From IMG/VR virus record IMGVR_UViG_3300017917_003822, positions 186,001-250,000 of that record: a stretch of DNA of 64,000 bases; one strand, 5' to 3'. Made by a program: the position numbers and the translations under genes. Positions 5,160-39,565 of this stretch are shown piece after piece (the first letter of the stretch is position 1; each line of letters starts with the position of its first letter). The notes beneath the pieces are model-generated. The model had not been told where the DNA came from. It was given only the letters and a program-made list of their open reading frames with translations, and did no database searches.

Positions 5160-6569
5160 ATGAGAAAAAACATACACGACTTTAGCTCTTTTGCTAAGAT
5201 TTATGAAGCTGGAAATGATATTAATCTTATCATCGGAGATTCGATCACACCAATCATTCTTAAAAATTCCAAGTCTCTTGATATTTTAGGAAATGCAGGT
5301 TCGGAAAGAACCCTTTGGAAACCCGGTATGGGTGTTAAGTGGTTGAAGGAAGCCGTTTCTAGATACCCAGTTACTCCAAATGTTAAAAATCTAGTAATCA
5401 ATATCGGAACCAATGGAGCTTTTAATCCAAAGGACGATATTAAAGGCCTAATTCAGGAGGTCAGAAGAGCATTTCCTTCGGCAAGATTATTCGTTGTTCA
5501 GGGATCTTGGGGATGGGGATATAATAAAAATGTAACTCCAGAAAAAGTTAAAACCTATTACGAGAGATTTAGAAATGAGGGGGTGAATGTGATAGATCCG
5601 CCAATCGGAAATGTCAAAGATCCACATACAGATCTTCCAATCTACCAAGAAATAGGGAATGCTATAGACAGAGCAATCTCATTGGGCTTACAGAGAGTTT
5701 CGCCGGAGGAAACCACTTCAGCAGATCAGTCTAAAACACAGGCTACTGGAACAATTATTAGCAGATCAGGGGATCCTTACAAATATAAGGTTGAAAATGA
5801 TCACTGGTTAGCAAAAAGAGAAGATCATTCCAGATGGTATGAAATAACAGGAAAGGATTTTAAACCAGCATACCAGGTTTCAATAGATATCCTGGACAGT
5901 GAAAACCCAAACCTTAGAACACTAGAAGCACCAAAGAGATCTAAAAAACCAGACACCGAGGGTGGTCCAGCAACCACTATTCTTCCTGTTGAGAAGGGAT
6001 CAGATCCGCAAAAGTTAGATCCGGAAGTATCTGAAAAATACAATTTTCATTTAATCCCAGATAACAAGGGAACAAATTACAGATCTGCACAATTTCCGCT
6101 CGAAATAATGAAACAGATGTATCCCAAGTACTCTATAAAGAATGTTATCAGACTTAACGGGGAAGGTAAAGATGGAAGACATCTTAAATCCGATCAATCA
6201 GTTTCTATTGCTGATGAAAGAAAGGTATGTCAGGAAATTGGATGTAACTTCTATGATCTATCAGCAAAAACGGATCAGGATCAGATTAATGAAATACTGT
6301 CGAAGGGTAACACTTTGATACATTGTGCTCATGGGGCAGATAGAACTGGTGGAAATGTTGCTTCGTATTTATATACAAAGAAACCAAATCCAAAATTAAC
6401 CACAACGGAGGAACTTTGGAAGTACACGACACAATATAATGACTGGAATTCATTAGCAATTAAAAAACCAAACACCTTCACTGAGGATGTTTATTTGGAG
6501 CAGGCTAAAAAATTCGGAGTTAGAGATCTGGAGCACGCTCAGGATCTAGCAAAAAAGTATAAACAATAA
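5160..6569 (+). CDS. SGNH/GDSL-like hydrolase fused to Cys-dependent (CX5R) phosphatase
   Basis: IIGDSI, NIGTNG, DPH in the N-half; HCAHGADRTG P-loop in the C-half. Confidence 0.65.
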   Translation: MRKNIHDFSSFAKIYEAGNDINLIIGDSITPIILKNSKSLDILGNAGSERTLWKPGMGVKWLKEAVSRYPVTPNVKNLVINIGTNGAFNPKDDIKGLIQEVRRAFPSARLFVVQGSWGWGYNKNVTPEKVKTYYERFRNEGVNVIDPPIGNVKDPHTDLPIYQEIGNAIDRAISLGLQRVSPEETTSADQSKTQATGTIISRSGDPYKYKVENDHWLAKREDHSRWYEITGKDFKPAYQVSIDILDSENPNLRTLEAPKRSKKPDTEGGPATTILPVEKGSDPQKLDPEVSEKYNFHLIPDNKGTNYRSAQFPLEIMKQMYPKYSIKNVIRLNGEGKDGRHLKSDQSVSIADERKVCQEIGCNFYDLSAKTDQDQINEILSKGNTLIHCAHGADRTGGNVASYLYTKKPNPKLTTTEELWKYTTQYNDWNSLAIKKPNTFTEDVYLEQAKKFGVRDLEHAQDLAKKYKQ

Positions 6570-19270: not shown

Positions 19271-19873
19271 ATGGTAAATAATTTCGACAGAATCCGAGAA
19301 CTGCTTAAATTCCCGGACAGTAATTCATTTTACTTTCTTCAGATATTAAAAAGAAGAAAGGATAATCCAGATCTTGGTAAAGATATGGTGCATATTGCCG
19401 ACTATTACATTTATAGTCTAGAGCAGTATGATGCCATGCAGAAGGACATTATCGATCTTTGTAATTCAAAGAACGCTAGAGCGTACTTTAGACTTAATTT
19501 AAGGGACGCTAATAAGGTCGCTATGCAGACTTTGAAGCGTGTGGTAGATCATATCACGTCTGGAAATTATAAGGCCGTAAAGAGCGCCTATGCGTCCTGT
19601 ACGGGTGAGTATGCATCTGATCCCGATAAGACATGGATCGTTGACATAGACTATAAAGATCTAGAAGGAGACATTGACATGAACATTAATGCAATCATTG
19701 CTCATGTACAGGCTCTAATATTTGAAACTGGGAGAGATGACACCGTTCATACCATCCCTACCAAGAATGGACTTCATGTGATATGCAGACCGTTTAATCT
19801 AAGTAAATTCCGTCAGGTTTATCCATCAATAGATGTACACAAGGATAACCCTACGATATTATATTGTCCATAA
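19271..19873 (+). CDS. putative archaeo-eukaryotic primase (AEP)-like protein
   Basis: WIVDID and TKNGLH resemble AEP motifs I and II. Confidence 0.5.
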   Translation: MVNNFDRIRELLKFPDSNSFYFLQILKRRKDNPDLGKDMVHIADYYIYSLEQYDAMQKDIIDLCNSKNARAYFRLNLRDANKVAMQTLKRVVDHITSGNYKAVKSAYASCTGEYASDPDKTWIVDIDYKDLEGDIDMNINAIIAHVQALIFETGRDDTVHTIPTKNGLHVICRPFNLSKFRQVYPSIDVHKDNPTILYCP

Positions 19874-21321
19874 TGGCTAAAACTAAAACTAAAAAACCCA
19901 TAATTAATCTTGAGACTCTTAACTCGGATCAGGCTAAAGCTTTTGACGAGTTAAGAGATTTCATCTACGACAAGTCCGACGACAGCGTTTACGTGCTAAA
20001 GGGCTGGGCAGGAACAGGTAAAACCTACTGTGTGAGTTTGCTTGTAAGATACGCACTTGAAGTCATACATCCGACACACAACTGGTATAAGATAGCAGTT
20101 ACTGGTCCAACTAATAAATCAGTAAGAGTTATCAAAAAAACCAGTGGACTAAGAAACTCTAGGGTGACTTTTCAAACAATTCATAAGCTTCTTGGACTGA
20201 CCGAGAAGATTACTAATGATGGTAAACAAGAGTTTGTCAATCAGGGAGAATTTAAACCGCAGATCAATTCAATTCGTTTACTTATTATTGATGAGGTTTC
20301 TATGCTCAATGATGATTTATTTCACGAGATTCTGAAATATCGAGAAAAGATTAAAATCATCTGCATGGGGGATCCTGCACAGATTCCACCAGTAGGAAGA
20401 CCAGATTGTATTCCATTTAGAGAAGAACTTGCTGAACATTACAGAATAAAGACTCTAGATCTTAAACAAATCATGAGGCAAAAAGAGGGTAATGCCATAA
20501 TCGATGCTTCAGTTGTGATCAGAAAGGAGCTTTATTCGAACAGACTTAGTATCGACAACGTGTCTAAAGTGAATGAGAATGGCGAGGGTATCAAGTTTTT
20601 AAATCTCAATTGTGCTGAGACGCGTAAGGGATTTTCAGAAAAACTGAGACAGTATTTTGTAACTGAGGATTTTGTAAAAGATTCCGAGTATGCTAAAGTG
20701 ATAGCATGGAGAAATAAAACGGTAGCAACTATGAACAACATCATCAGAAAAACAATCTATGGAGACGTTGCGGAGGGTACTAAAATTCTGGAAGGTGAAA
20801 AACTTATCGCCAACAACCCAGTCATCGAAGACAAGATTATTATATTGAATACCAATGATGAGTTTACTGTTGAGCGTTACACTATAGAAAAGGACACAGC
20901 AAGATTTGTTATTGATGATCATCCCGATGCGGAACCACTGTCAGTTGAATTAAACTATTATGACACGGAGGTAAGTTACCTGAATGATGCAGATGAGGTT
21001 GTTAAGGTCTGGATTAAGATACTACATGAGAGTAGTGAGGTTGAATTTCAGAAGGTTGCTAACATTCTTAAACTTCGAGCAATACAGAAGAGAGGAAAGG
21101 ATAAATCTTGGCTTCATTATTATAACTTTCTAAGAAGATTTGCTGATGTAAATTACGCTTATGCAATCACCGCACACAAATCCCAAGGAAGTACATATAA
21201 CACAACATTCGTTCTGGAGGATGATATTGATATGAATCTGGACATAGTGGAAAGAAACAGAATCAAATATACAGCCTATACAAGAGCGAGTAGAAAGCTC
21301 TATGTTCTAAAGAGATTCTAG
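19873..21321 (+). CDS. SF1B helicase, Dda/RecD-like
   Basis: GWAGTGKT, TIHKLL, IIDEVSM, GDPAQIPP, AITAHKSQGS, YTAYTRA. Confidence 0.9.
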   Translation: MAKTKTKKPIINLETLNSDQAKAFDELRDFIYDKSDDSVYVLKGWAGTGKTYCVSLLVRYALEVIHPTHNWYKIAVTGPTNKSVRVIKKTSGLRNSRVTFQTIHKLLGLTEKITNDGKQEFVNQGEFKPQINSIRLLIIDEVSMLNDDLFHEILKYREKIKIICMGDPAQIPPVGRPDCIPFREELAEHYRIKTLDLKQIMRQKEGNAIIDASVVIRKELYSNRLSIDNVSKVNENGEGIKFLNLNCAETRKGFSEKLRQYFVTEDFVKDSEYAKVIAWRNKTVATMNNIIRKTIYGDVAEGTKILEGEKLIANNPVIEDKIIILNTNDEFTVERYTIEKDTARFVIDDHPDAEPLSVELNYYDTEVSYLNDADEVVKVWIKILHESSEVEFQKVANILKLRAIQKRGKDKSWLHYYNFLRRFADVNYAYAITAHKSQGSTYNTTFVLEDDIDMNLDIVERNRIKYTAYTRASRKLYVLKRF

Positions 21322-21640: not shown

Positions 21641-22099
21641 ATGTTATCGGATTTATCAAGAGGAGAAGAAAATGTATTAAAAAGCATCAGAAACTCCGAA
21701 AAGTATCAGGAAAAAAAATTCTCGGACAACTATTTTAAGTTGTCAGGAGAAATGGGAAGGGTTGTGGAGGCTGCCAAAATATACATCCTGGACAACTTCC
21801 GAAAGGTTGATGACTATTCGGATCTTTCCATGATGCTCAGATGTGCAAACCATAAGGGAACCATTTATATTGGTAAGAAGGAGAATAAAAAAAGAAGTAA
21901 ATCCAACATCATCGATAAGATGTTGTCTGAATTGAATGAGATAACGATCGAGGTTTCGTCTTTTGATGATGCAGTTTACGATTGGAGCGACGGAGATTTT
22001 TCAATCGTTTTAAATGGGGTTGGATACAATTGGATAGATCCACTTTCCATCATCAACATAGCGGACCACATAGAAAGCAAACTAGATGAAAACAATTAG
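21641..22099 (+). CDS. hypothetical protein
   Basis: Operon context. Confidence 0.7.
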   Translation: MLSDLSRGEENVLKSIRNSEKYQEKKFSDNYFKLSGEMGRVVEAAKIYILDNFRKVDDYSDLSMMLRCANHKGTIYIGKKENKKRSKSNIIDKMLSELNEITIEVSSFDDAVYDWSDGDFSIVLNGVGYNWIDPLSIINIADHIESKLDENN

Positions 22100-23321: not shown

Positions 23322-24110
23322 ATGAGCGAGAGTAAATCTCTATTTAAGGCCTTTATCAGGGTGGTAAAATCCATCTCGGAAAGGGATAATTATTTCCTTG
23401 GTGGATTTGGTGCGGTTGAGGTTGTGAGAGAACCTCTAATAGAGGCCAAAGACAAATCTGAGGTTAAGAAGATATTACTGGAGAGATATCCCCAATTTTT
23501 TACCAACGGTAAAGTCCACGAAAGAGAAACTAAGGATAATGCTCAATTTTTCTATGTTGTAATATACCCTCTATACGAATGGGAGAAAAAACAAATCGAA
23601 GAGGGAGAATGGATATGTGAAAGTTGTGGACATATTCATGAAAATCAATATCTGTCAAAACCAAGAATTAACGAGAGGTTATTTGGAACAGATAAGCTCT
23701 TCTGTAGGAGTGACGAGGATCTTTGTCTGGAGAATTACAAGAAGGAATATTATAAGGATGTAGATCTTCCAGATGATCTAGCATACATCAAAAAAGATAG
23801 TCCAAATTACATCTATAAATGTACGGAGAAAGCAACAGGTAAAAGCTACATAGGTAAAACTAGAAATGCTCCATTCTTTAGATGGTGGAATCACCTAACG
23901 CACTCAAGCAGTCCCTTTGGAATTTATCTAAGACAAACCAAATTGAGTGATTGGACTTTCGAAGTTCTTGAGGAGCTGCCAGGAAATATTGATGAGAGCG
24001 AAGTTTTTAGAATAGAATCTGAGTACATAATGAAATACGATAGCATTCAGAATGGCTATAATACGGTAATTAGTAATAAGAAGGTTCTGGCTGATAACAA
24101 CGATAACTAA
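23322..24110 (+). CDS. GIY-YIG nuclease domain protein with Zn-binding region
   Basis: YIYKC......SYIGKT...RWWNH, E...I..Y.....GYN; CESCG. Confidence 0.7.
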   Translation: MSESKSLFKAFIRVVKSISERDNYFLGGFGAVEVVREPLIEAKDKSEVKKILLERYPQFFTNGKVHERETKDNAQFFYVVIYPLYEWEKKQIEEGEWICESCGHIHENQYLSKPRINERLFGTDKLFCRSDEDLCLENYKKEYYKDVDLPDDLAYIKKDSPNYIYKCTEKATGKSYIGKTRNAPFFRWWNHLTHSSSPFGIYLRQTKLSDWTFEVLEELPGNIDESEVFRIESEYIMKYDSIQNGYNTVISNKKVLADNNDN

Positions 24111-24161
24111 CTTTTTGTAGCTTGTTTCAGTTGCAAATTATTAGCTAAACATGTAAAAATT

Positions 24162-24353
24162 ATGGATAAGTGGAATTACGATAAAAGAGTTAGAGAATTA
24201 TCTCAAAAAATTGAACAGTATAAAATACACGCTAAACGTGAAATTGAAAACAATAAAGTTTGTCATCCAAGCAAAGTGAGAAATAATTCTCAACGATATT
24301 TGGAAATCTGTAAACAAAGGTATAAGGATTTTACAGGTGAGGACTATGAATAA
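24162..24353 (+). CDS. cassette gene 1, hypothetical
   Basis: 63 aa; followed by TTGCTTATAAC core. Confidence 0.65.
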   Translation: MDKWNYDKRVRELSQKIEQYKIHAKREIENNKVCHPSKVRNNSQRYLEICKQRYKDFTGEDYE

Positions 24354-24363
24354 TTTTTATTGC

Positions 24364-24418
24364 TTATAACGTTCCCACGCTTGGCGAAGTGGCGGATGTA
24401 AAGCACTAAATTTTTAAT
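24364..24418 (+). repeat. attC-like half-site A (right arm missing)
   Basis: TTATAAC-GTTCCCACGCTTGGCGAAGTGGCGG...CACTAAATTT; no complementary arm follows. Confidence 0.6.
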
Positions 24419-24428
24419 TAAACAAATT

Positions 24429-24647
24429 ATGAAAAAGAACAAAACTCGAAATATAGACAAACAACTTCAAAAATTGTTATATGAACAATATGGTGAAGAA
24501 TACACTCAATGGTATATGAAAACTTTTGATGTTAAATTATATTTTGATGGAGCGGAAACATCAGATAGAGGTTATTTAACAGATAGAGAGTTTGACGAAT
24601 GGAAAGAAGAAAAATGGAAACAATTTTTGTCCAAGTATGGTTATTAA
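24429..24647 (+). CDS. cassette gene 2, hypothetical
   Basis: 72 aa; followed by ATATAAC core. Confidence 0.65.
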   Translation: MKKNKTRNIDKQLQKLLYEQYGEEYTQWYMKTFDVKLYFDGAETSDRGYLTDREFDEWKEEKWKQFLSKYGY

Positions 24648-24658
24648 AAATTTATTAT

Positions 24659-24791
24659 ATATAACGTTTTCCGTGTATAATAAGTGGCGTACACGATAAA
24701 CCAAGCCACTAAATTTAAAAATTAACTTTAAAATACAAAACAAATGAAAAATTTAAAACTTAGAAGCCATTTTTTATACACGTTGTTATGT
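24659..24791 (+). repeat. attC-like site B
   Basis: TAAC(24662)-GTTTTC-CGTGTATAATAAGTGGC pairs with GCCATTTTTTATACACG-TT-GTTA(24785-88). Confidence 0.8.
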
Positions 24792-25028
24792 GTAGTTTTT
24801 TTAACATCTTGTAATTGTGATAAACAAAAAAAAGAAATTATTATTGAAGAAAATAATCATCAAGAAGATTATTACATTTACAATGATACATTACAAAATA
24901 ATGCAATTCAAGAAAAAAATAATAGTAGCGGTGTAGGTATCACAACAAGTAGTAAATTAGGTGTAGAAGTAACAGAAGGTGTTTATATTAATTCAAGCGG
25001 TGAGTTAGAATTAGGATTTGGTTTGTAA
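24744..25028 (+). CDS. cassette gene 3, putative lipoprotein
   Basis: MKNLKLRSHFLYTLLCVVFLTSC lipobox; start lies inside site B. Confidence 0.7.
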   Translation: MKNLKLRSHFLYTLLCVVFLTSCNCDKQKKEIIIEENNHQEDYYIYNDTLQNNAIQEKNNSSGVGITTSSKLGVEVTEGVYINSSGELELGFGL

Positions 25029-25034
25029 AATTAC

Positions 25035-25157
25035 ACATAACGGTTTGCGTATTGGCGTTGTTGCCAATACTGATGTTAAATTGAAAAACTAAATTTGAAA
25101 TATATGGAAAATGACAATATGAAACAAGAAGGCAATAACGCTAATACGCTGTTATCG
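25035..25157 (+). repeat. attC-like site C
   Basis: TAAC(25038)-GGTTT-GCGTATTGGCGTTGTTGCC pairs with GGCAATAACGCTAATACGC-T-GTTA(25151-54). Confidence 0.8.
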
Positions 25158-25352
25158 GCAGTTGTTGTTCATCCACATCCGATAATTGAAATGCAAATAA
25201 AGAACTTTAAAAAAGATGAAGTTGGCTACATCGCTGAATGTATTTTATACAACAAAGAATTTAAAGAAGTAGAAAGCTCATTCTTTATTGACGAATATAG
25301 AGCCAACGAAATCATTGATTTAATGCAGACGTTTTTGAACAATTGCCGATAA
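25104..25352 (+). CDS. cassette gene 4, hypothetical
   Basis: ATG 25104 or 25119 inside site C; stop codon is the TAA of the terminal core AACAATTGCCGATAA. Confidence 0.65.
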
Positions 25353-25536
25353 AAAATATATTGATAATACTTCATCTATACACACTTTAAGACATTCATC
25401 ATTTACAAATTTACTAGAATCTGGAACAGATTTAAGGATAATTCAAAAAATTGCGGGACATTCAAGTTCCAAAACAACAGAAATCTACACCCATGTTTCG
25501 AATAATATCCTAAATAAAGTAAAACTTCCGATTTAA
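25351..25536 (+). pseudogene. C-terminal fragment of a tyrosine recombinase (XerC/D-integrase family); not in ORF track
   Basis: [61 protein letters not shown]; HxLRH, GH and catalytic Tyr present; in-frame TGA at 25336 and no start codon. Confidence 0.9.
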
Positions 25537-25568
25537 TTTTTTTATGTCGAGATAATTAATTACTTTTG
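25537..25568 (+). promoter_or_regulatory. T-tract/CG-N11/TAnnTTTG promoter
   Basis: CG 25548-49, TACTTTTG 25561-68. Confidence 0.7.
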
Positions 25569-25600: not shown

Positions 25601-26170
25601 ATGGGACTAGATATCACGGTTTATAAACCAATTAAAGTAAAGGAGGAGGATTTTCAAAAGATTGAGGATTTTTTAAACATCGAAGACCACCCGGAACTTT
25701 CAGTGTTTTCTGATTTTATATTCGAGAAAGAAAACGAATACTATGATCTTGAAAACGAAGCCAGAGATCTGGGTTACAATCTTGAGGATTTAATCTGGAC
25801 CGGAACATCTTTTGGACCGGAATCTGCTTACACTTTCAAAGATAGTGATGGAAATGATGTTAAAATTATCATCACAAAAACAATCAAGAAAATTGATAAG
25901 TGTATTGCCATCGAGGAGGTTGGGTATCAGAGAAAAGGTGCGAATAAAAAATTCTATGAAGATAAGATATGGGACAGTCCATGTGTTATAGATCAGAAGA
26001 CACTAAACAATCACTGGGAGACTTACTTTTCAAACCAAACCCCCGAGAGCAAAGGTGGATGGGGAAGCGGGGTTGAATATGAACAGGATGATGAGACCAT
26101 GAGAAAAAACTTTAAGAAAAATATCATAGATAAATTCATCGAGGGGGAAACTTTTGTCATATATCATTAG
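25601..26170 (+). CDS. hypothetical protein (MGLD family)
   Basis: MGLDITVY...EVGYQRK. Confidence 0.75.
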   Translation: MGLDITVYKPIKVKEEDFQKIEDFLNIEDHPELSVFSDFIFEKENEYYDLENEARDLGYNLEDLIWTGTSFGPESAYTFKDSDGNDVKIIITKTIKKIDKCIAIEEVGYQRKGANKKFYEDKIWDSPCVIDQKTLNNHWETYFSNQTPESKGGWGSGVEYEQDDETMRKNFKKNIIDKFIEGETFVIYH

Positions 26171-27232: not shown

Positions 27233-28312
27233 ATGAAATACGACATAAACATATTAAATAGCTATATTGATAATGGGCTGCTGGAAAAAAACCCACATCC
27301 AACATTACCTCTCGATATCTACAACTACTCCCGGGAGTGCCAATTTTCACGTCATTGGGATGAGATAACCCTCAACATGAGGGGCACAGTCTTAGACAGA
27401 GATGGAAATGTAGTAGCAAGAACATTTTCAAAATTCTTCAATCTGGAAGAACATCAACCCGAAGAAATTCCAAATGAATCATTTGACGTTTTTGAAAAAA
27501 TGGATGGTTCACTGGGTATTTTATTTAATTACAACGATCAGTGGATATTTGCAACTAAGGGATCATTCTCGTCAGATCAATCAATCAGAGGTAAGGAAAT
27601 TTTGGAGAAGTACGACTATCAAAGTCTAGCGAAAGATTGCACATATTTATTCGAGATCATATATCCAGAAAATAGAATTGTCGTCAGCTACGATTTCGAA
27701 GATCTAGTACTATTAGCAATCATCAATAACGAGGATGGCTATGAATATGACATACACTCGGAGGAGGCGCTTTCTGATGTACTGGATATCAAGGGTTTTA
27801 GAATTGTTAAAAAATACCATGGAGTTCAGGACTATAAGGAGCTTAAGAAAATCATAGATAACAATGCAGAGGGATTCGTCATCAGATTCAAATCTGGTTT
27901 CAGAATGAAGATCAAAGGGGAAGAGTATGTTAGACTCCATCGGCTTCTAACAAACTTCTCGAACATTGACATCTGGGAACTTTTGAAGAATGGGGAGGAT
28001 CTTGGTAATTTTCTGGACAGAGTTCCTGATGAATTTGATCTCTGGGTCAAGAATATTATCTCAGATCTAAGAAGACAGTACCTGGTAATCGAGGAATCAG
28101 CACATGAGGTCCATTCATCATTCTTTGTTGCGAGACCAGATTTTTCGAGAGAAGCGGGAAAGAAAGAATATGCTCTGTGGGTTAAAGAACAAGAAAAGAA
28201 TTTGCAAGGTATATTATTTTGTCTGTATGACGAGAAAAGGTATTCGGATCACATTTGGAAAATGATAAGACCGAAATACCAAAAACCATTTTGGAACAAA
28301 ATTGAGGATTGA
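27233..28312 (+). CDS. RNA ligase, T4 Rnl1 family
   Basis: KFFN, EKMDGSLG, ATKGSF, FEIIYPENRIV, EGFV, KIK. Confidence 0.88.
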   Translation: MKYDINILNSYIDNGLLEKNPHPTLPLDIYNYSRECQFSRHWDEITLNMRGTVLDRDGNVVARTFSKFFNLEEHQPEEIPNESFDVFEKMDGSLGILFNYNDQWIFATKGSFSSDQSIRGKEILEKYDYQSLAKDCTYLFEIIYPENRIVVSYDFEDLVLLAIINNEDGYEYDIHSEEALSDVLDIKGFRIVKKYHGVQDYKELKKIIDNNAEGFVIRFKSGFRMKIKGEEYVRLHRLLTNFSNIDIWELLKNGEDLGNFLDRVPDEFDLWVKNIISDLRRQYLVIEESAHEVHSSFFVARPDFSREAGKKEYALWVKEQEKNLQGILFCLYDEKRYSDHIWKMIRPKYQKPFWNKIED

Positions 28313-32577: not shown

Positions 32578-32896
32578 CAAGGAAAAAGAATTATGTGAAT
32601 GCGGGAAGATGGCCGTTTGGTGCTACCTTCCAGGTTACAGAGATGGTAGCAGTCCATATTCCTGTGAAGATTGCGTAAATCGAGGTTGTGACTGTAATCA
32701 CCGATATGTTGACCCTAACTCATATCATCCTCCACTCGATGAACCGGATCTTCCAGATGGTGAGGAGGGGGTTGATTGGACTTGGGTAGATGAAGATAAG
32801 AAAGCATGGACATATATCGACGAAAAGGGAAGACAGTATCCCTGCTGTGAATATCATCATGATCCCGAGGGGTTCGACGTTTACGAGGAAGACTAA
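32561..32896 (+). CDS. Cys-rich hypothetical protein
   Basis: CECG, CEDC..RGCDC, PCCEY. Confidence 0.7.
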   Translation: MSIAGNKEKELCECGKMAVWCYLPGYRDGSSPYSCEDCVNRGCDCNHRYVDPNSYHPPLDEPDLPDGEEGVDWTWVDEDKKAWTYIDEKGRQYPCCEYHHDPEGFDVYEED

Positions 32897-32909
32897 AAAA
32901 AGATAATAT

Positions 32910-33200
32910 ATGGTAGAATTAAAAGAAAAGAAAGAAATTTTGATCTGTGATTGCCACTCGACAGAACACCAGGTCGTGATATATTACAGTGAGGATGAGT
33001 TTGAGGATGGTAGAAAATACCCCATGTGTTATTTTCATATTCACTTAAACAAATTACCATTTCTGGAGAGACTGAGGTATGCGATCAAATACATATTCGG
33101 ACGGAAGTCGAGATATGGGGCATTCGATGAATTTATCATTAACCCATCCGATGCTGATAAGTTACAGGATCTGGTTAATTATTTAAAACAAAAAGAATGA
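32910..33200 (+). CDS. hypothetical protein
   Basis: CDCHS.EH. Confidence 0.7.
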   Translation: MVELKEKKEILICDCHSTEHQVVIYYSEDEFEDGRKYPMCYFHIHLNKLPFLERLRYAIKYIFGRKSRYGAFDEFIINPSDADKLQDLVNYLKQKE

Positions 33201-37046: not shown

Positions 37047-38189
37047 ATGGAAAGAAAATTAGCAAGTATACAGAAAATAGGAAAAGTTCTGCCTATAGAG
37101 GGAGCAGATGCAATCGAGATGGTAATGGTTAACTCGTGGAAGGTCGTTTCTAAGAAGGATGAATTCAAGGAAGGTGACTATTGCGTTTATTTTGAAATTG
37201 ATTCATTTCTTCCAATTAGAGAGGAATTTGAGTTCTTGAGAAAATCCTCCTATAGAAAGATGGGGGATCTTGAGGGATTCAGACTAAAAACCATAAAACT
37301 TAGAGGACAGGTTAGTCAGGGGCTTTGTTTACCAATCTCCATATTGGAGGGAGATGGTGAAATGAAAATTGGAATCAGCAAGCAACCTTGGGGAGATCAA
37401 TTACAGCTTGGTCCTTATGACGATGCTCTTGTTATTCAAGAAGGAGTTGATGTCACAGAACATTTGGGAGTTGTTAAATTTGAACCACCTATACCGGCTG
37501 AACTTGCAGGAAAGGTTAAAGGAAATTTCCCTGGTTTCATCAGAAAAACAGACGAGGAAAGAATCCAGAATATGACGAAGCAATTTGAGGAGATGAAGTC
37601 ACATCAATACTACATCACGGAAAAACTTGACGGTAGTTCAGCAACTTACTATTTTAGAGACGGGGTTTTCGGTGTCTGTTCAAGAAACCTTGAGTTAGCG
37701 GATCCTGGAGAATTTGTACCTGGTACTATCATTGGTGAAGATGGTGTCGAAAGACCCAAAAAAGAAAATACATTCTGGAAGGTTGCTAGAGAGCTAAAGA
37801 TAGCAGAAAAACTAGGATCTCTTAATCAAAATTACGCAATCCAGGGGGAGCTTATTGGGGAAGGAGTGCAAGGAAATCCTTACAAGATCAAAGGACACAC
37901 ACTTAGAATATTTAATGTATTCAATATCGATCAACAGGAGTATCTGGGACTTGATGAAATGAGGGATTTTCTTTCGAAGGTTAATGTTGACGATTCACCA
38001 TTGGAATTGGTTCCTGTCATTGATGAAAACTACAAGCTGCATGGAACCATCGAGGAAATTCTACAATATGCTGAGGGTAAATCAGTTCTTCATAATGAGG
38101 CCGAGAGAGAAGGAATTGTTATCAGAAACAAAGACAAGAGCATCTCATTCAAGGCTATTTCTAATAAATTCTTGCTAAAGGAAAAATAG
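37047..38189 (+). CDS. RNA ligase, DRB0094/Rnl5 family
   Basis: RKLAS, PIEGADAIE, YFEIDS, KLRGQVSQG, KTDEERIQN, EKLDGSS, EREGIV, FKAISN. Confidence 0.9.
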   Translation: MERKLASIQKIGKVLPIEGADAIEMVMVNSWKVVSKKDEFKEGDYCVYFEIDSFLPIREEFEFLRKSSYRKMGDLEGFRLKTIKLRGQVSQGLCLPISILEGDGEMKIGISKQPWGDQLQLGPYDDALVIQEGVDVTEHLGVVKFEPPIPAELAGKVKGNFPGFIRKTDEERIQNMTKQFEEMKSHQYYITEKLDGSSATYYFRDGVFGVCSRNLELADPGEFVPGTIIGEDGVERPKKENTFWKVARELKIAEKLGSLNQNYAIQGELIGEGVQGNPYKIKGHTLRIFNVFNIDQQEYLGLDEMRDFLSKVNVDDSPLELVPVIDENYKLHGTIEEILQYAEGKSVLHNEAEREGIVIRNKDKSISFKAISNKFLLKEK

Positions 38190-38190
38190 T

Positions 38191-38514
38191 ATGCAGAAAC
38201 ATCAATTAGAATATTTCGATTGGTTCGATATCCAAAGAGAAATCTGTAAGGAGATGGGTATTGAAGAACAATACTTCAGAGATTATCACAAGTTAGTTGG
38301 TGGAGAATATAAGGATCTTTGGCATATTTGGCTGGAATACTTCCAGTCGGAGGTTACAAATGATACGATAGTTCGTAATGATTGCGATGAAAGAATGGAA
38401 ATTAAAATTGAATGGATAACCGAAGAAGGTGACGAATGGGCAATACCCTTTGTTGAGGCGGTTTACAAGGTTTGGGATAAATTCGGAATCGAGTATGTAA
38501 GATACAGCTGGTAA
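38191..38514 (+). CDS. hypothetical protein
   Basis: 107 aa ORF. Confidence 0.7.
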   Translation: MQKHQLEYFDWFDIQREICKEMGIEEQYFRDYHKLVGGEYKDLWHIWLEYFQSEVTNDTIVRNDCDERMEIKIEWITEEGDEWAIPFVEAVYKVWDKFGIEYVRYSW

Positions 38515-38530
38515 ATACAAAATACTATAA

Positions 38531-39565
38531 ATGAAAATAATTATCACAGGAGGTGCGGGTTATATTGGATCCCACACTGCAGTAGAAGCACTAAGAGCAG
38601 GTCATGAAGTTATCATTATAGATTCCTTCATCAATTCATCGAGAGATGTACTTAAAAACATAGAAAAAGCATCAGGCAAGCCTTTTGTAGCTATCGATGT
38701 ATGTATGACTCAGAATACGCTAGATATTGCGGAGAAGCTTTTTGGTTTTGCACATAACACCGATGCAATTATTCACTTTGCTGCATTAAAGGATTCCCCA
38801 GGATCAACAGAAAACCCGCTGGGATATTATAGAAACAATATAGACTCATTGCTTAGTGCGCTGGGGGTTTCTAAATTACTTAAAATCAAGAACTTCATAT
38901 TCTCCAGTTCTGCGACGGTTTATGGTTATCCCGAGTATCTACCGATCAAAGAAACACACCCAATTCTAAGAGGAACTACACCATACGGGACTTCAAAAAT
39001 AATGGGAGAATGGATTCTAGAGGATGTAACCAGAGGTAACGATATGAGGTCCGTTGCACTGAGGTATTTTAATCCGGCTGGTGCAGATCACACTGGACTT
39101 ATTGGGGAAATGCCAATAGGTAGAGCAACAAACCTTGTACCTATTATAACACAATCAGCCGCTGGAATATATGGTCCGTTAAAAATAACTGGTACTGATT
39201 ATTCAACTCCAGATGGCTCTGCGATTAGAGACTACATCCACGTGACGGACTTAGCAAAGGCGCACTTAGCGGCTCTAGATTGGATGGTTGACCACGAAAT
39301 GAAGTTCTTTGAGACTTTTAATCTGGGTACGGGTAGAGGAACATCGGTAATTGAAATGGCTGAATTGTTCGACAAGGAGATTGCCCCGGGCTTATTAAAA
39401 ACAGAGTTTGCTGATAGAAGACCAGGAGATCCGGCCGAAGTTTGGTGTGATTCATCAAAGGCACAAAGAATTCTTGGATGGAGATCTGAATTAGACAACT
39501 TGGATATTTTGAGAAGTGCCTGGGAGTGGCAGAAGAACATTGCAACTGAGAATTCGGATATATAA
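38531..39565 (+). CDS. galE: UDP-glucose 4-epimerase
   Basis: TGGAGYIGSH, HFAALK, SSSATVYG, YGTSK, LRYFNP, RDYIHV.DLA. Confidence 0.9.
   Translation: MKIIITGGAGYIGSHTAVEALRAGHEVIIIDSFINSSRDVLKNIEKASGKPFVAIDVCMTQNTLDIAEKLFGFAHNTDAIIHFAALKDSPGSTENPLGYYRNNIDSLLSALGVSKLLKIKNFIFSSSATVYGYPEYLPIKETHPILRGTTPYGTSKIMGEWILEDVTRGNDMRSVALRYFNPAGADHTGLIGEMPIGRATNLVPIITQSAAGIYGPLKITGTDYSTPDGSAIRDYIHVTDLAKAHLAALDWMVDHEMKFFETFNLGTGRGTSVIEMAELFDKEIAPGLLKTEFADRRPGDPAEVWCDSSKAQRILGWRSELDNLDILRSAWEWQKNIATENSDI
39557..39564 (+). promoter_or_regulatory. putative late promoter RATATATA
   Basis: GATATATA, 4 nt before ATG. Confidence 0.6.

Follow-up and report, generated by a model that had tools for sequence, protein, structure and literature searches.

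Results

An AT-rich island of small genes and hairpins ends in a truncated integrase gene

The virus record IMGVR_UViG_3300017917_003822 is a contig of 270,629 bp, which genes for virion proteins, a Dda helicase and an RNA ligase identify as a phage. We analysed a 64-kb stretch of this contig (the window), in which positions 24111-25536 hold four small genes, separated by imperfect hairpins that open with TAAC and close with GTTA, and the 3' end of a tyrosine recombinase (integrase) gene (Table 1). We argue below that this island is very probably the inactivated remnant of a cassette-capture platform native to Bacteroidota-type phages. An earlier reading of the bare sequence (the original prediction) had proposed an integron-like array here and had pointed to its base composition; G+C content is indeed 0.23-0.31 in the island versus 0.35-0.43 in its flanks, with the drop starting near 24100.

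Table 1. Features of the island and its 3' border, in window coordinates. Core, TAAC or TAACG at the left end of a site; X and X' arms, sequence following GTTA and preceding the next core, respectively.
Feature	Position	Strand	Remarks
Cassette 1 remnant	24111-24366	+	gene 1 and a proper X' arm 5' of the site A core
Gene 1	24162-24353	+	63 aa; in cassette 1 remnant
Cassette 2	24367-24664	+	site A, gene 2, X' arm, TAA of next core
Site A, decayed 125-nt-class hairpin	24367-24428	+	core TAACG, 5' stem arm and loop motif ACTAAATTT kept
Gene 2	24429-24647	+	72 aa; in cassette 2
Site B, attC-like hairpin	24662-24788	+	127 nt; loop holds ACTAAATTT and the gene 3 start
Gene 3, predicted lipoprotein	24744-25028	+	94 aa; signal peptide and L-T-S-C lipobox, from translation
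X arm of cassette 3	24785-24799	+	complementary to 25027-25041 across gene 3; 15 nt, 93%
X' arm of cassette 3 and site C core TAAC	25027-25041	+	junction matrix 23.4 bits
Site C, attC-like hairpin	25038-25154	+	117 nt; loop holds TAAATTTG and the gene 4 start
Gene 4	25104-25352	+	82 aa from ATG 25104 (range 82-85 aa); stop is the TAA of the terminal core
Site C GTTA and X arm of cassette 4	25151-25166	+	complementary to 25338-25352
Cassette 4 3' end, X' arm and TAA	25338-25352	+	array fused here to the interior of the integrase gene
Integrase remnant	25351-25536	+	residues 207-267 of a 267-aa Xer-like tyrosine recombinase, and stop; homology, Pfam
Intergenic phage motif TTTTTTTAYNYCGRRR	25537-25552	+	directly after the integrase stop; same in relatives

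Sites B and C are complete. In site B, TAAC is followed by a 6-nt spacer, a 17-bp stem with two mismatches (24672-24688 with 24766-24782 according to a repeat finder), a 2-nt spacer and GTTA; in site C the spacers measure 5 and 1 nt and the stem, again with two mismatches, 19 bp (25047-25065 with 25131-25149). This is the asymmetric architecture that had been described for these hairpins. A detector written for the pattern (TAAC, spacer, stem, spacer, GTTA) reports only B and C in the window and nothing in 20 shuffles. A covariance model built from 24 sites of a shorter, 88-nt class, all on other contigs and none from the window, matches site C with 52 bits (E 4e-9) and site B with 32 bits (E 1.5e-4), its single further match being at noise level (E 8.5). 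Junction matrices, likewise built from other contigs only, match at 24355 (A-left), 24650 (B-left), 24775 (B-right), 25026 (C-left) and 25141 (C-right), all on the + strand, and yield one extra weak match (56235) at shuffle level; the left-junction matrix scores 17.4 bits at A-left (24355-24380) and reaches the value given in Table 1 at site C. Detector, matrices and model thus agree that hairpins B and C and half-site A lie where they had been predicted.

Site A deserves the name half-site because its left junction is present while its right arm is absent: the 3' arm is gone, with a weak trace before GTTAT at 24475. Its left part is similar to 125-nt sites elsewhere (for example L003 2441; L numbers denote loci) and to bacterial sites. 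Detector, junction matrices and covariance model find neither a right arm for site A nor any site upstream of gene 1, and the left boundary of cassette 1 is placed only by the drop in G+C content. Site C folds to -19.2 kcal/mol (z -3.1) on the + strand and to -14.4 kcal/mol on the - strand, and an element in L042 (4787-4913) is 91% identical to it across exactly its extent.

The loops share a motif, as had been claimed: ACTAAATTT stands at 24405, 24708 and 25088 (five copies in the whole window vs 2.2 expected), and in the site B loop it is a possible -7 promoter box. Loops of bacterial 125-nt sites (L157 8569-8694, L097 9867-9992 and others) contain two to four repeats of GCAC[AT]AA[AT]GTT, a version of which ACTAAATTT resembles; ACTAAA occurs in 26 of 80 phage loops of the 125-nt class. 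The outer flanks do pair across genes: two pairs of 15 nt are each 93% complementary, the second joining 25152-25166 to 25338-25352. The one non-Watson-Crick position of the first pair is a G.T at position 7 after GTTA, a feature that recurs in other arrays.

The four small open reading frames (ORFs) have no Pfam match at cut-off and no PHROG match. The signal peptide of gene 3 is encoded by the 3' stem arm of site B, GTTA and the X arm. Gene 2, the only one for which a large protein database was searched, has homologues of 87-90% identity on three short metagenome contigs, each time next to different neighbours, rather than in a fixed order without such hairpins; in L167 and L169, where the 3' end of gene 2 is kept, homology stops at X'-TAACG and a different hairpin follows. 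Genes 1, 3 and 4 have no homologues in the fetched loci, with the exception of the hairpin-encoded N-terminus of gene 4, which is also found in L042.

At the other end of the island, an open frame (25339-25533) matches PF00589 positions 123-170 of 172 (E 1e-13), confirming the predicted integrase fragment. The 61 residues that are left match the C-termini (residues 207-267) of full-length relatives with up to 93% identity and include H-x-x-R, H and the catalytic Y but neither the first Arg nor the Lys; tblastn detects no further piece of the gene in the window. In about 60 loci, DNA homology to full-length integrase genes sets in at 25349-25352, directly after the cassette 4 X' arm and TAA, so that everything from the core C through codon 206 is missing. 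As the last cassette is fused into the integrase gene, the insertion site (attI) and about 206 codons have gone. With attI absent, the integrase reduced to residues 207-267 and site A decayed, the window copy is a dead remnant.

Intact arrays directly precede full-length integrase genes in related viruses

Full-length relatives of this integrase, proteins of 265-269 aa, occur in at least 144 viral contigs, and 79 loci were scanned for hairpins. We find 224 hairpins of the same design, 223 of them upstream of the integrase gene, one overlapping it and none downstream, the scanned sequence amounting to 410 kb downstream vs 278 kb upstream. The arrays directly precede the integrase and all sites have one polarity, with the long spacer on the TAAC side. 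The expectation that hairpin arrays should be linked to full-length homologues of the recombinase is therefore upheld. A reading of the region as a shufflon or other inversion system, in which segments that flip are bordered by identical short inverted repeats and carry genes on both strands, was rejected: all sites share one orientation and the longest ORF is on the + strand in 137 of 141 cassettes (median 84 aa).

Hairpin lengths fall into three classes of about 48, 88 and 125 nt, sites B and C belonging to the last. In the two classes tested with RNAalifold (88 and 48 nt) the hairpin is recovered, with compensatory changes at 16 of 19 and 10 of 20 pairs, respectively; TAACG is paired with TGTTA and followed by a 4-nt bulge on the 5' side. 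Rfam motifs such as Flavo-1, which the original prediction had suggested as possible matches, gave no meaningful hit in the window region (E<=10) or in five arrays (E<=1), the sole matches being spurious miRNA-like hairpins.

Similarity between different arrays is mostly confined to the hairpins, from the TAAC start to the GTTA end, comparable in this respect to the repeat families of chromosomal integrons. At the core itself (TAACG) and in its flank (A-T-T, five variable bases, TAAC) positions are conserved. Where arrays have a gene in common, the limits of homology are informative: between L018 and L024 it runs from one TAACG to the next (97.6% over 422 nt), and in the pairs L008/L038 and L030/L034 it ends exactly at the downstream TAACG, after which a different hairpin follows. 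Because homology stops at the TAACG before a different hairpin, the hairpin must travel with the gene downstream of it. The claim that each cassette has complementary ends stands, but the unit differs from what had been assumed, running from core to core and joining a hairpin to the downstream rather than the upstream gene.

Complementarity of the ends can be assessed across 137 neighbouring site pairs by comparing the 12 nt after GTTA (X) with the 12 nt before the next TAAC (X'). On average 8.3 of 12 positions are complementary, compared to 4.3 for random partners, and position 7 of the pairing is a conserved G.T. This X/X' complementarity is what a circularised cassette would need.

Cassette stop codons coincide with the next core or fall no more than about 20 nt from it, the stop being the TAA of that core in 28 of 141 cassettes of relatives, and in the 125-nt class 35 of 60 ORFs start within the loop. 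Among the 35 longest cassette products, matches include DNA methylases, an Arr-like protein, GNAT, RNA ligase and exoribonuclease. In one subclass of the 125-nt hairpins (L008 1109 and 2296, L012 3589 and 5052, L020 2306 and 4764, L021 5091 and 5400, L028 17), the sequence codes for a conserved N-terminal peptide that finishes with E-N-L-N-I-S-D-V, and the 3' stem arm plus GTTA provide the codons of this ending; since the hairpin encodes this peptide, otherwise unrelated cassette proteins share a leader.

Cassettes vary at a conserved site beside the integrase gene

Nearly all full-length relatives carry the sequence TAAC/TATTATATATA, mostly 36 or 52 nt before the integrase start codon. Sequence 5' of this attI-like TAAC is variable and resembles an X' arm, and three loci (L048, L049, L051) are identical from the attI-like site onward and unrelated before it.

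Closely related isolates offer a finer view. Distant integrase homologues (32-39% identity) are encoded by the Polaribacter phages Freya and Leef and the Cellulophaga phage Ingeline. An insertion of 4.9 kb with 12 small genes, at ...TTTACAAC/ACCCC..., distinguishes Freya_1 and Freya_10, and Freya_9 is identical to Freya_10 except for one 304-nt cassette at the same AAC/ACCCC point, about 50 nt before the integrase start; the first base of this cassette is the G after AAC and its end reads ...GCTAAC. Cassette variation between otherwise identical phages, which the original prediction had asked for, thus exists, and exactly at the conserved site beside the integrase gene. The ten Freya isolates, all from one host (L162, L165, L170; MT732463-MT732472), show a graded series of 0 to 12 cassettes before the integrase. 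Danklef phages, from another host strain, have some of these cassettes, and 38% of the tested Freya region, in common with them at 97% identity. The paper describing Freya gives the range of genome sizes, with cassettes unmentioned (PMC8776804).

The recombinase is Xer-like and lacks the IntI-specific insertion

Across 26 full-length relatives mean identity is 76%, with no variation in the catalytic residues R, K, H-x-x-R, H and Y. Among curated models, the best matches are to XerA (NF040815; 171 bits vs a cut-off of 220) and IntI (TIGR02249; 155 vs 265); NF011946 gives 98 vs 435, and the matches to TIGR02249 and NF011946 each fall into two stretches. Bacterial relatives reach 220-222 bits on NF040815, and they are borderline for a model entitled 'site-specific tyrosine recombinase/integron integrase'; they and Freya remain below the cut-offs of the IntI models. 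A role like that of XerA in chromosome dimer resolution does not fit the phage proteins, which fall short of the XerA cut-off and are accompanied by many long hairpins with variable arms and by no single 28-bp dif.

The original prediction had suggested looking for the IntI-specific insertion in full-length homologues. It is absent. Compared to VchIntIA (2a3v), 34 residues (174-207) replace the 82 residues 176-257 of IntI4, and the I2 helix around patch III is missing, so that the protein is Xer/XerA-like and about 50 residues shorter at this point. For want of this insertion the system is not an integron in the strict sense.

One strand is able to fold, and bacterial arrays suggest that it acts as DNA

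Stems read on the + strand comprise 3164 Watson-Crick pairs, 241 G.T and 5 A.C. With this imbalance, the + strand is able to fold whereas its complement would be left with A.C mismatches. In phages the folding strand is also the coding strand, and bacterial arrays allow the two to be separated. Integrase relatives with 42-47% identity are found in genomes and metagenome-assembled genomes assigned to Bacteroidota, Chlorobi and Ignavibacteria, where sites follow the integrase gene and are oriented the other way, one after almost every ORF; the layout is gene then site, and cassettes include GNAT and a beta-lactamase-fold gene. Here the G.T-rich strand is antisense to the cassette genes, so a role of the hairpins as RNA cannot be general, and on this ground we rejected an RNA-structure reading. 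The simplest reading of these sequence patterns is that the substrate would be a folded strand of DNA corresponding to the bottom strand of integrons, for which resolution is replicative. Of the proposal of a Bacteroidota-type, integron-like capture system of phages, the integron-like part is supported by the attI-like site and the arrays; restriction to phages is not, given that bacterial chromosomes have the system too.

Read from the first ATG, the bacterial integrase ORFs measure 355-388 aa (L157 6620-7786, L097 6677-7813, L098, L125, L099), which would add about 100 N-terminal residues that have no Pfam match; the first ATG is assumed to be the start codon.

Discussion

A model for cassette capture

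The observations above may be accommodated as follows. In relatives, an intact platform consists of up to ten single-gene cassettes on one strand, then TAAC/TATTATATATA, then the recombinase gene. Each cassette extends from one core (TAA/CG) to the next and comprises a hairpin of about 48, 88 or 125 nt (with a stem of 12-20 bp that varies in sequence and keeps its pairing), the gene body, and an X' arm complementary to the X arm. In an excised circle, X and X' would come together and extend the core into a 16-bp stem. We infer that the folded + strand is what the recombinase recognises and that cleavage falls between A and C of the 5' core; as in integrons, strand exchange with attI would then amount to insertion, and exchange with another cassette site to excision. 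Loops of the 125-nt class contain the start codon, and probably the promoter, of the following gene, in which case phage cassettes would be self-expressing.

In the window, three to four cassettes are left, the last 3' core having been joined to an attI-like position inside the recombinase gene. This fusion would have deleted attI and codons 1-206, and site A would have decayed afterwards. Was the deletion the work of the integrase itself? The junction 17-mer (25349-25365) lies above the 99th percentile of attI-likeness among all integrase-gene positions, and in 18 relatives the homologous position is among the three highest-scoring ones of its gene. We slightly prefer an integrase-mediated deletion at such a pseudo-attI, and only slightly because of the low absolute score of the junction; since nothing more than ATAA is shared there, a deletion through microhomology is equally possible. 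Integrases inactivated by internal deletions are found in two other viral contigs (L037 at about 5930-6010, L070 at about 5900-6010), so that recombinase decay is recurrent.

Several observations weigh against a cassette platform as described. All evidence for recombination by the recombinase is comparative. The protein lacks the I2 helix, which IntI uses to read extrahelical bases. The Freya integrase is only 34% identical to the window-type family, and the Freya sites are barely detected by the covariance model (the first site only, at 19 bits). In the window itself, the left end of the array has no site, site B has a minimum free energy fold that does not surpass shuffled sequence (a consequence of its long, AT-rich loop), attI-likeness at the truncation junction is modest (0.9 bits vs 15-19 for most true sites), and the sequence shared at that junction is limited to 4 nt (ATAA).

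Alternative explanations

The strongest competitor retains the platform and has the recombinase act on double-stranded cores, in the style of Xer/dif or pdif, hairpin potential being incidental. It would sit well with a Xer-like recombinase without I2 and with the sequence conservation of TAACG and its flank positions. However, what is kept in the stems is the pairing and not the sequence, the preference for G.T over A.C makes sense only for one folded strand, and the sites are direct repeats of 48-130 nt rather than 28-bp sites with two binding arms. We regard this alternative as improbable.

Could the hairpins simply be regulatory, a terminator plus promoter between small phage genes, with shuffling brought about by homologous recombination between repeats, much as for the promoter early stem-loops of T4-type phages? 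Promoter-like boxes and start codons are indeed present in the 125-nt loops, hairpins of similar sequence recur as families in several arrays, and the small ORFs make up a hyperplastic zone flanked by genes for a Dda-like helicase and an RNA ligase. If repeats were the substrate of exchange, however, homology between arrays should break within them, when in fact it breaks at the 5-nt core. Strict polarity and adjacency to one recombinase family, the conserved attI-like site at the point where siblings differ, and X/X' complementarity across genes (for which there is no regulatory rationale) all argue in the same direction, as does the fact that the well-pairing strand in bacteria is antisense to the genes. 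A purely regulatory role is thus very unlikely.

We give as little credence to a third possibility, that these are ordinary attC sites derived from a host integron (clusters of attC sites lacking integrase, CALIN) and serviced by a host IntI, the short recombinase being an unrelated enzyme of lysogeny or of the Xer type. AAC and GTT cores, an unpaired spacer and a variable loop are all found in attC, and a 48-nt-class site of Polaribacter phage P12002L, which has no integrase, was called attC by HattCI. Yet IntI1 did not recombine the P12002L site (PMC9892861), no IntI-type gene is evident in the ORF lists of the loci examined in detail, the insertion point 36-52 nt from the start of the short recombinase is conserved along with that gene, and the polarity of the sites relative to it is invariant. 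A chance pattern, finally, is already refuted: a lone 15-nt inverted repeat with one mismatch is no rarity in 2 kb of AT-rich DNA (the repeat finder returns 175 inverted pairs), but no site arises in shuffles, independent models match only these coordinates above background, and hundreds of homologous sites exist elsewhere.

Relation to integrons and other systems

A cassette-capture platform has much in common with integrons: arrays of single-gene cassettes; imperfect hairpins that preserve structure rather than sequence, with AAC and GTT cores and a similar range of lengths (48-130 nt here); an unpaired spacer by the core; insertion beside the integrase gene; one strand that folds well; and cassette ends that are complementary, as expected after circularisation. 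The TAAC-GGTTG spacer is reminiscent of that of attC-aadA7. By the features that define attC (AAC and GTT cores, unpaired spacer, variable loop) the hairpins resemble attC sites, and TAAC/TATTATATATA takes the place of attI in relatives, the window having lost it. Bacterial relatives even share the canonical order of gene then site. In phages, by contrast, the hairpin precedes the gene and contains its start and a putative promoter, where an integron cassette is a promoterless ORF followed by attC and depends on a common promoter (Pc); cassette genes have the orientation of the integrase gene and point towards it; the X/X' stem, once extended, has 16 bp with a fixed G.T; and the carriers are phages, including a jumbo phage. 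The system is integron-like in its working and outside the integron family as defined, that is, a parallel system.

Three other systems are similar in part. CTX-phi is integrated by XerCD, which lack an I2 helix, via a hairpin-folded single-stranded attP, a precedent for a Xer-type recombinase acting without I2 on a one-strand hairpin. Unlike here, there is one site per phage, the whole genome enters dif, and neither cassette arrays nor a dedicated recombinase are involved. Promoter early stem-loops (PeSLs) of T4-type phages precede small accessory genes of hyperplastic regions, each stem-loop carrying a promoter; PeSLs differ in having no recombinase, crossover core or attI and are thought to shuffle by homologous recombination. 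The pdif modules of Acinetobacter plasmids are small gene modules bounded by Xer-type recombinase sites, those being 28-bp double-stranded sites with conserved arms in alternating inverted orientation, against long hairpins in direct orientation here. A pdif-module reading of the island was rejected on the grounds that all sites have one orientation.

Parts of such arrays have been seen before. Qi et al. (2023) described attC-like sites flanking methyltransferase genes in P12002L (PMC9892861), interpreted them as parts of an integron lacking its integrase, and found that IntI1 failed on attC1. The primer sequence given for P12002L_attC1 falls into the 48-nt class and contains the invariant loop CGTTTTAATG, and our covariance model finds 3-4 sites in this phage (L166). 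That CALIN study did not recognise a cognate recombinase, attI or a phage-native platform (PMC9892861). In P12002L, three sites in gene sense (38035-39245) stand before a small gene, the gene for a DNA methyltransferase and a Mom-like gene; a weaker fourth match lies at 32797-32925, and an integrase of the window-type family is absent. We found no description of the combined recombinase-hairpin-attI platform in the full-text literature, whose coverage excludes most subscription journals, so prior work is possible.

Taken more broadly, we lean towards the view that this would be a second integron-type system, in which a short Xer-like recombinase reads folded single-stranded hairpins without I2, and that it would be widespread in Bacteroidota, Chlorobi, Ignavibacteria and the phages of these groups. 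The phages, virulent and jumbo ones among them, would on balance use it to gain, shed and swap self-expressing accessory genes, for example orphan methyltransferases, with counter-defence a likely function. The system would be either an independent invention or a relative of the ancestor of IntI-based integrons. In the current view of integrons, gain of the I2 helix is what let a Xer-like enzyme recombine hairpins (PMC4792948, PMC7790495); a natural cassette platform without I2 would test this directly and bears on how integrons originated. Phages, for their part, would gain a dedicated gene-capture device, and its cassettes would provide a sorted catalogue of small accessory genes, most of unknown function. 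The integrase gene of Freya, Leef and Ingeline is at present read as a hint of lysogeny, when at least Freya may use it for cassette exchange. Note that these arrays escape integron finders that require IntI, which would at best list them as orphan attC clusters. Being compact and having short structured sites, the recombinase could also become a tool for Bacteroidota genetics.

Genomic setting of the island

We found no DNA similarity between GenBank phages and the 6-kb region around the island, and the flanking gene at 25601-26170 has no relative in IMG/VR except itself. On the 5' side, a 262-aa ORF (23322-24110) combines a zinc-ribbon-like N-terminal part with a GIY-YIG homing-endonuclease domain, and its end (at GATAACTAAC) coincides exactly with the start of the AT-rich island.

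On the 3' side, TTTTTTTAYNYCGRRR is present six times in the window (19235, 25537, 27183, 34804, 48163, 62801) vs 0.75 expected, always on the + strand, and is probably a phage promoter. It stands 3' of the integrase stop in the window, L014 and L024, and in L024 additionally 5' of the array. It might let the whole array-plus-integrase module move via homologous exchange.

In related jumbo phages (L014, L024, L007) the array and the integrase are intact and again lie between the helicase and ligase genes, but their order with respect to a 152-aa ORF (21641-22099 in the window) differs. The homologue of this ORF comes directly after the integrase in L014 and L024, and homologues lie downstream of the integrase in L007, L008 and L011, while in the window it is placed 3.2 kb 5' of the array remnant. 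This difference in position implies a rearrangement of the segment running from the Dda-like helicase (19864-21321) to the RNA ligase (27233-28312). The window has two RNA ligase genes, at 27233-28312 and 37047-38189, belonging to the PHROG families phrog_562 and phrog_968. In L014, an RNA-ligase gene (216-1280) is itself a cassette inside the array.

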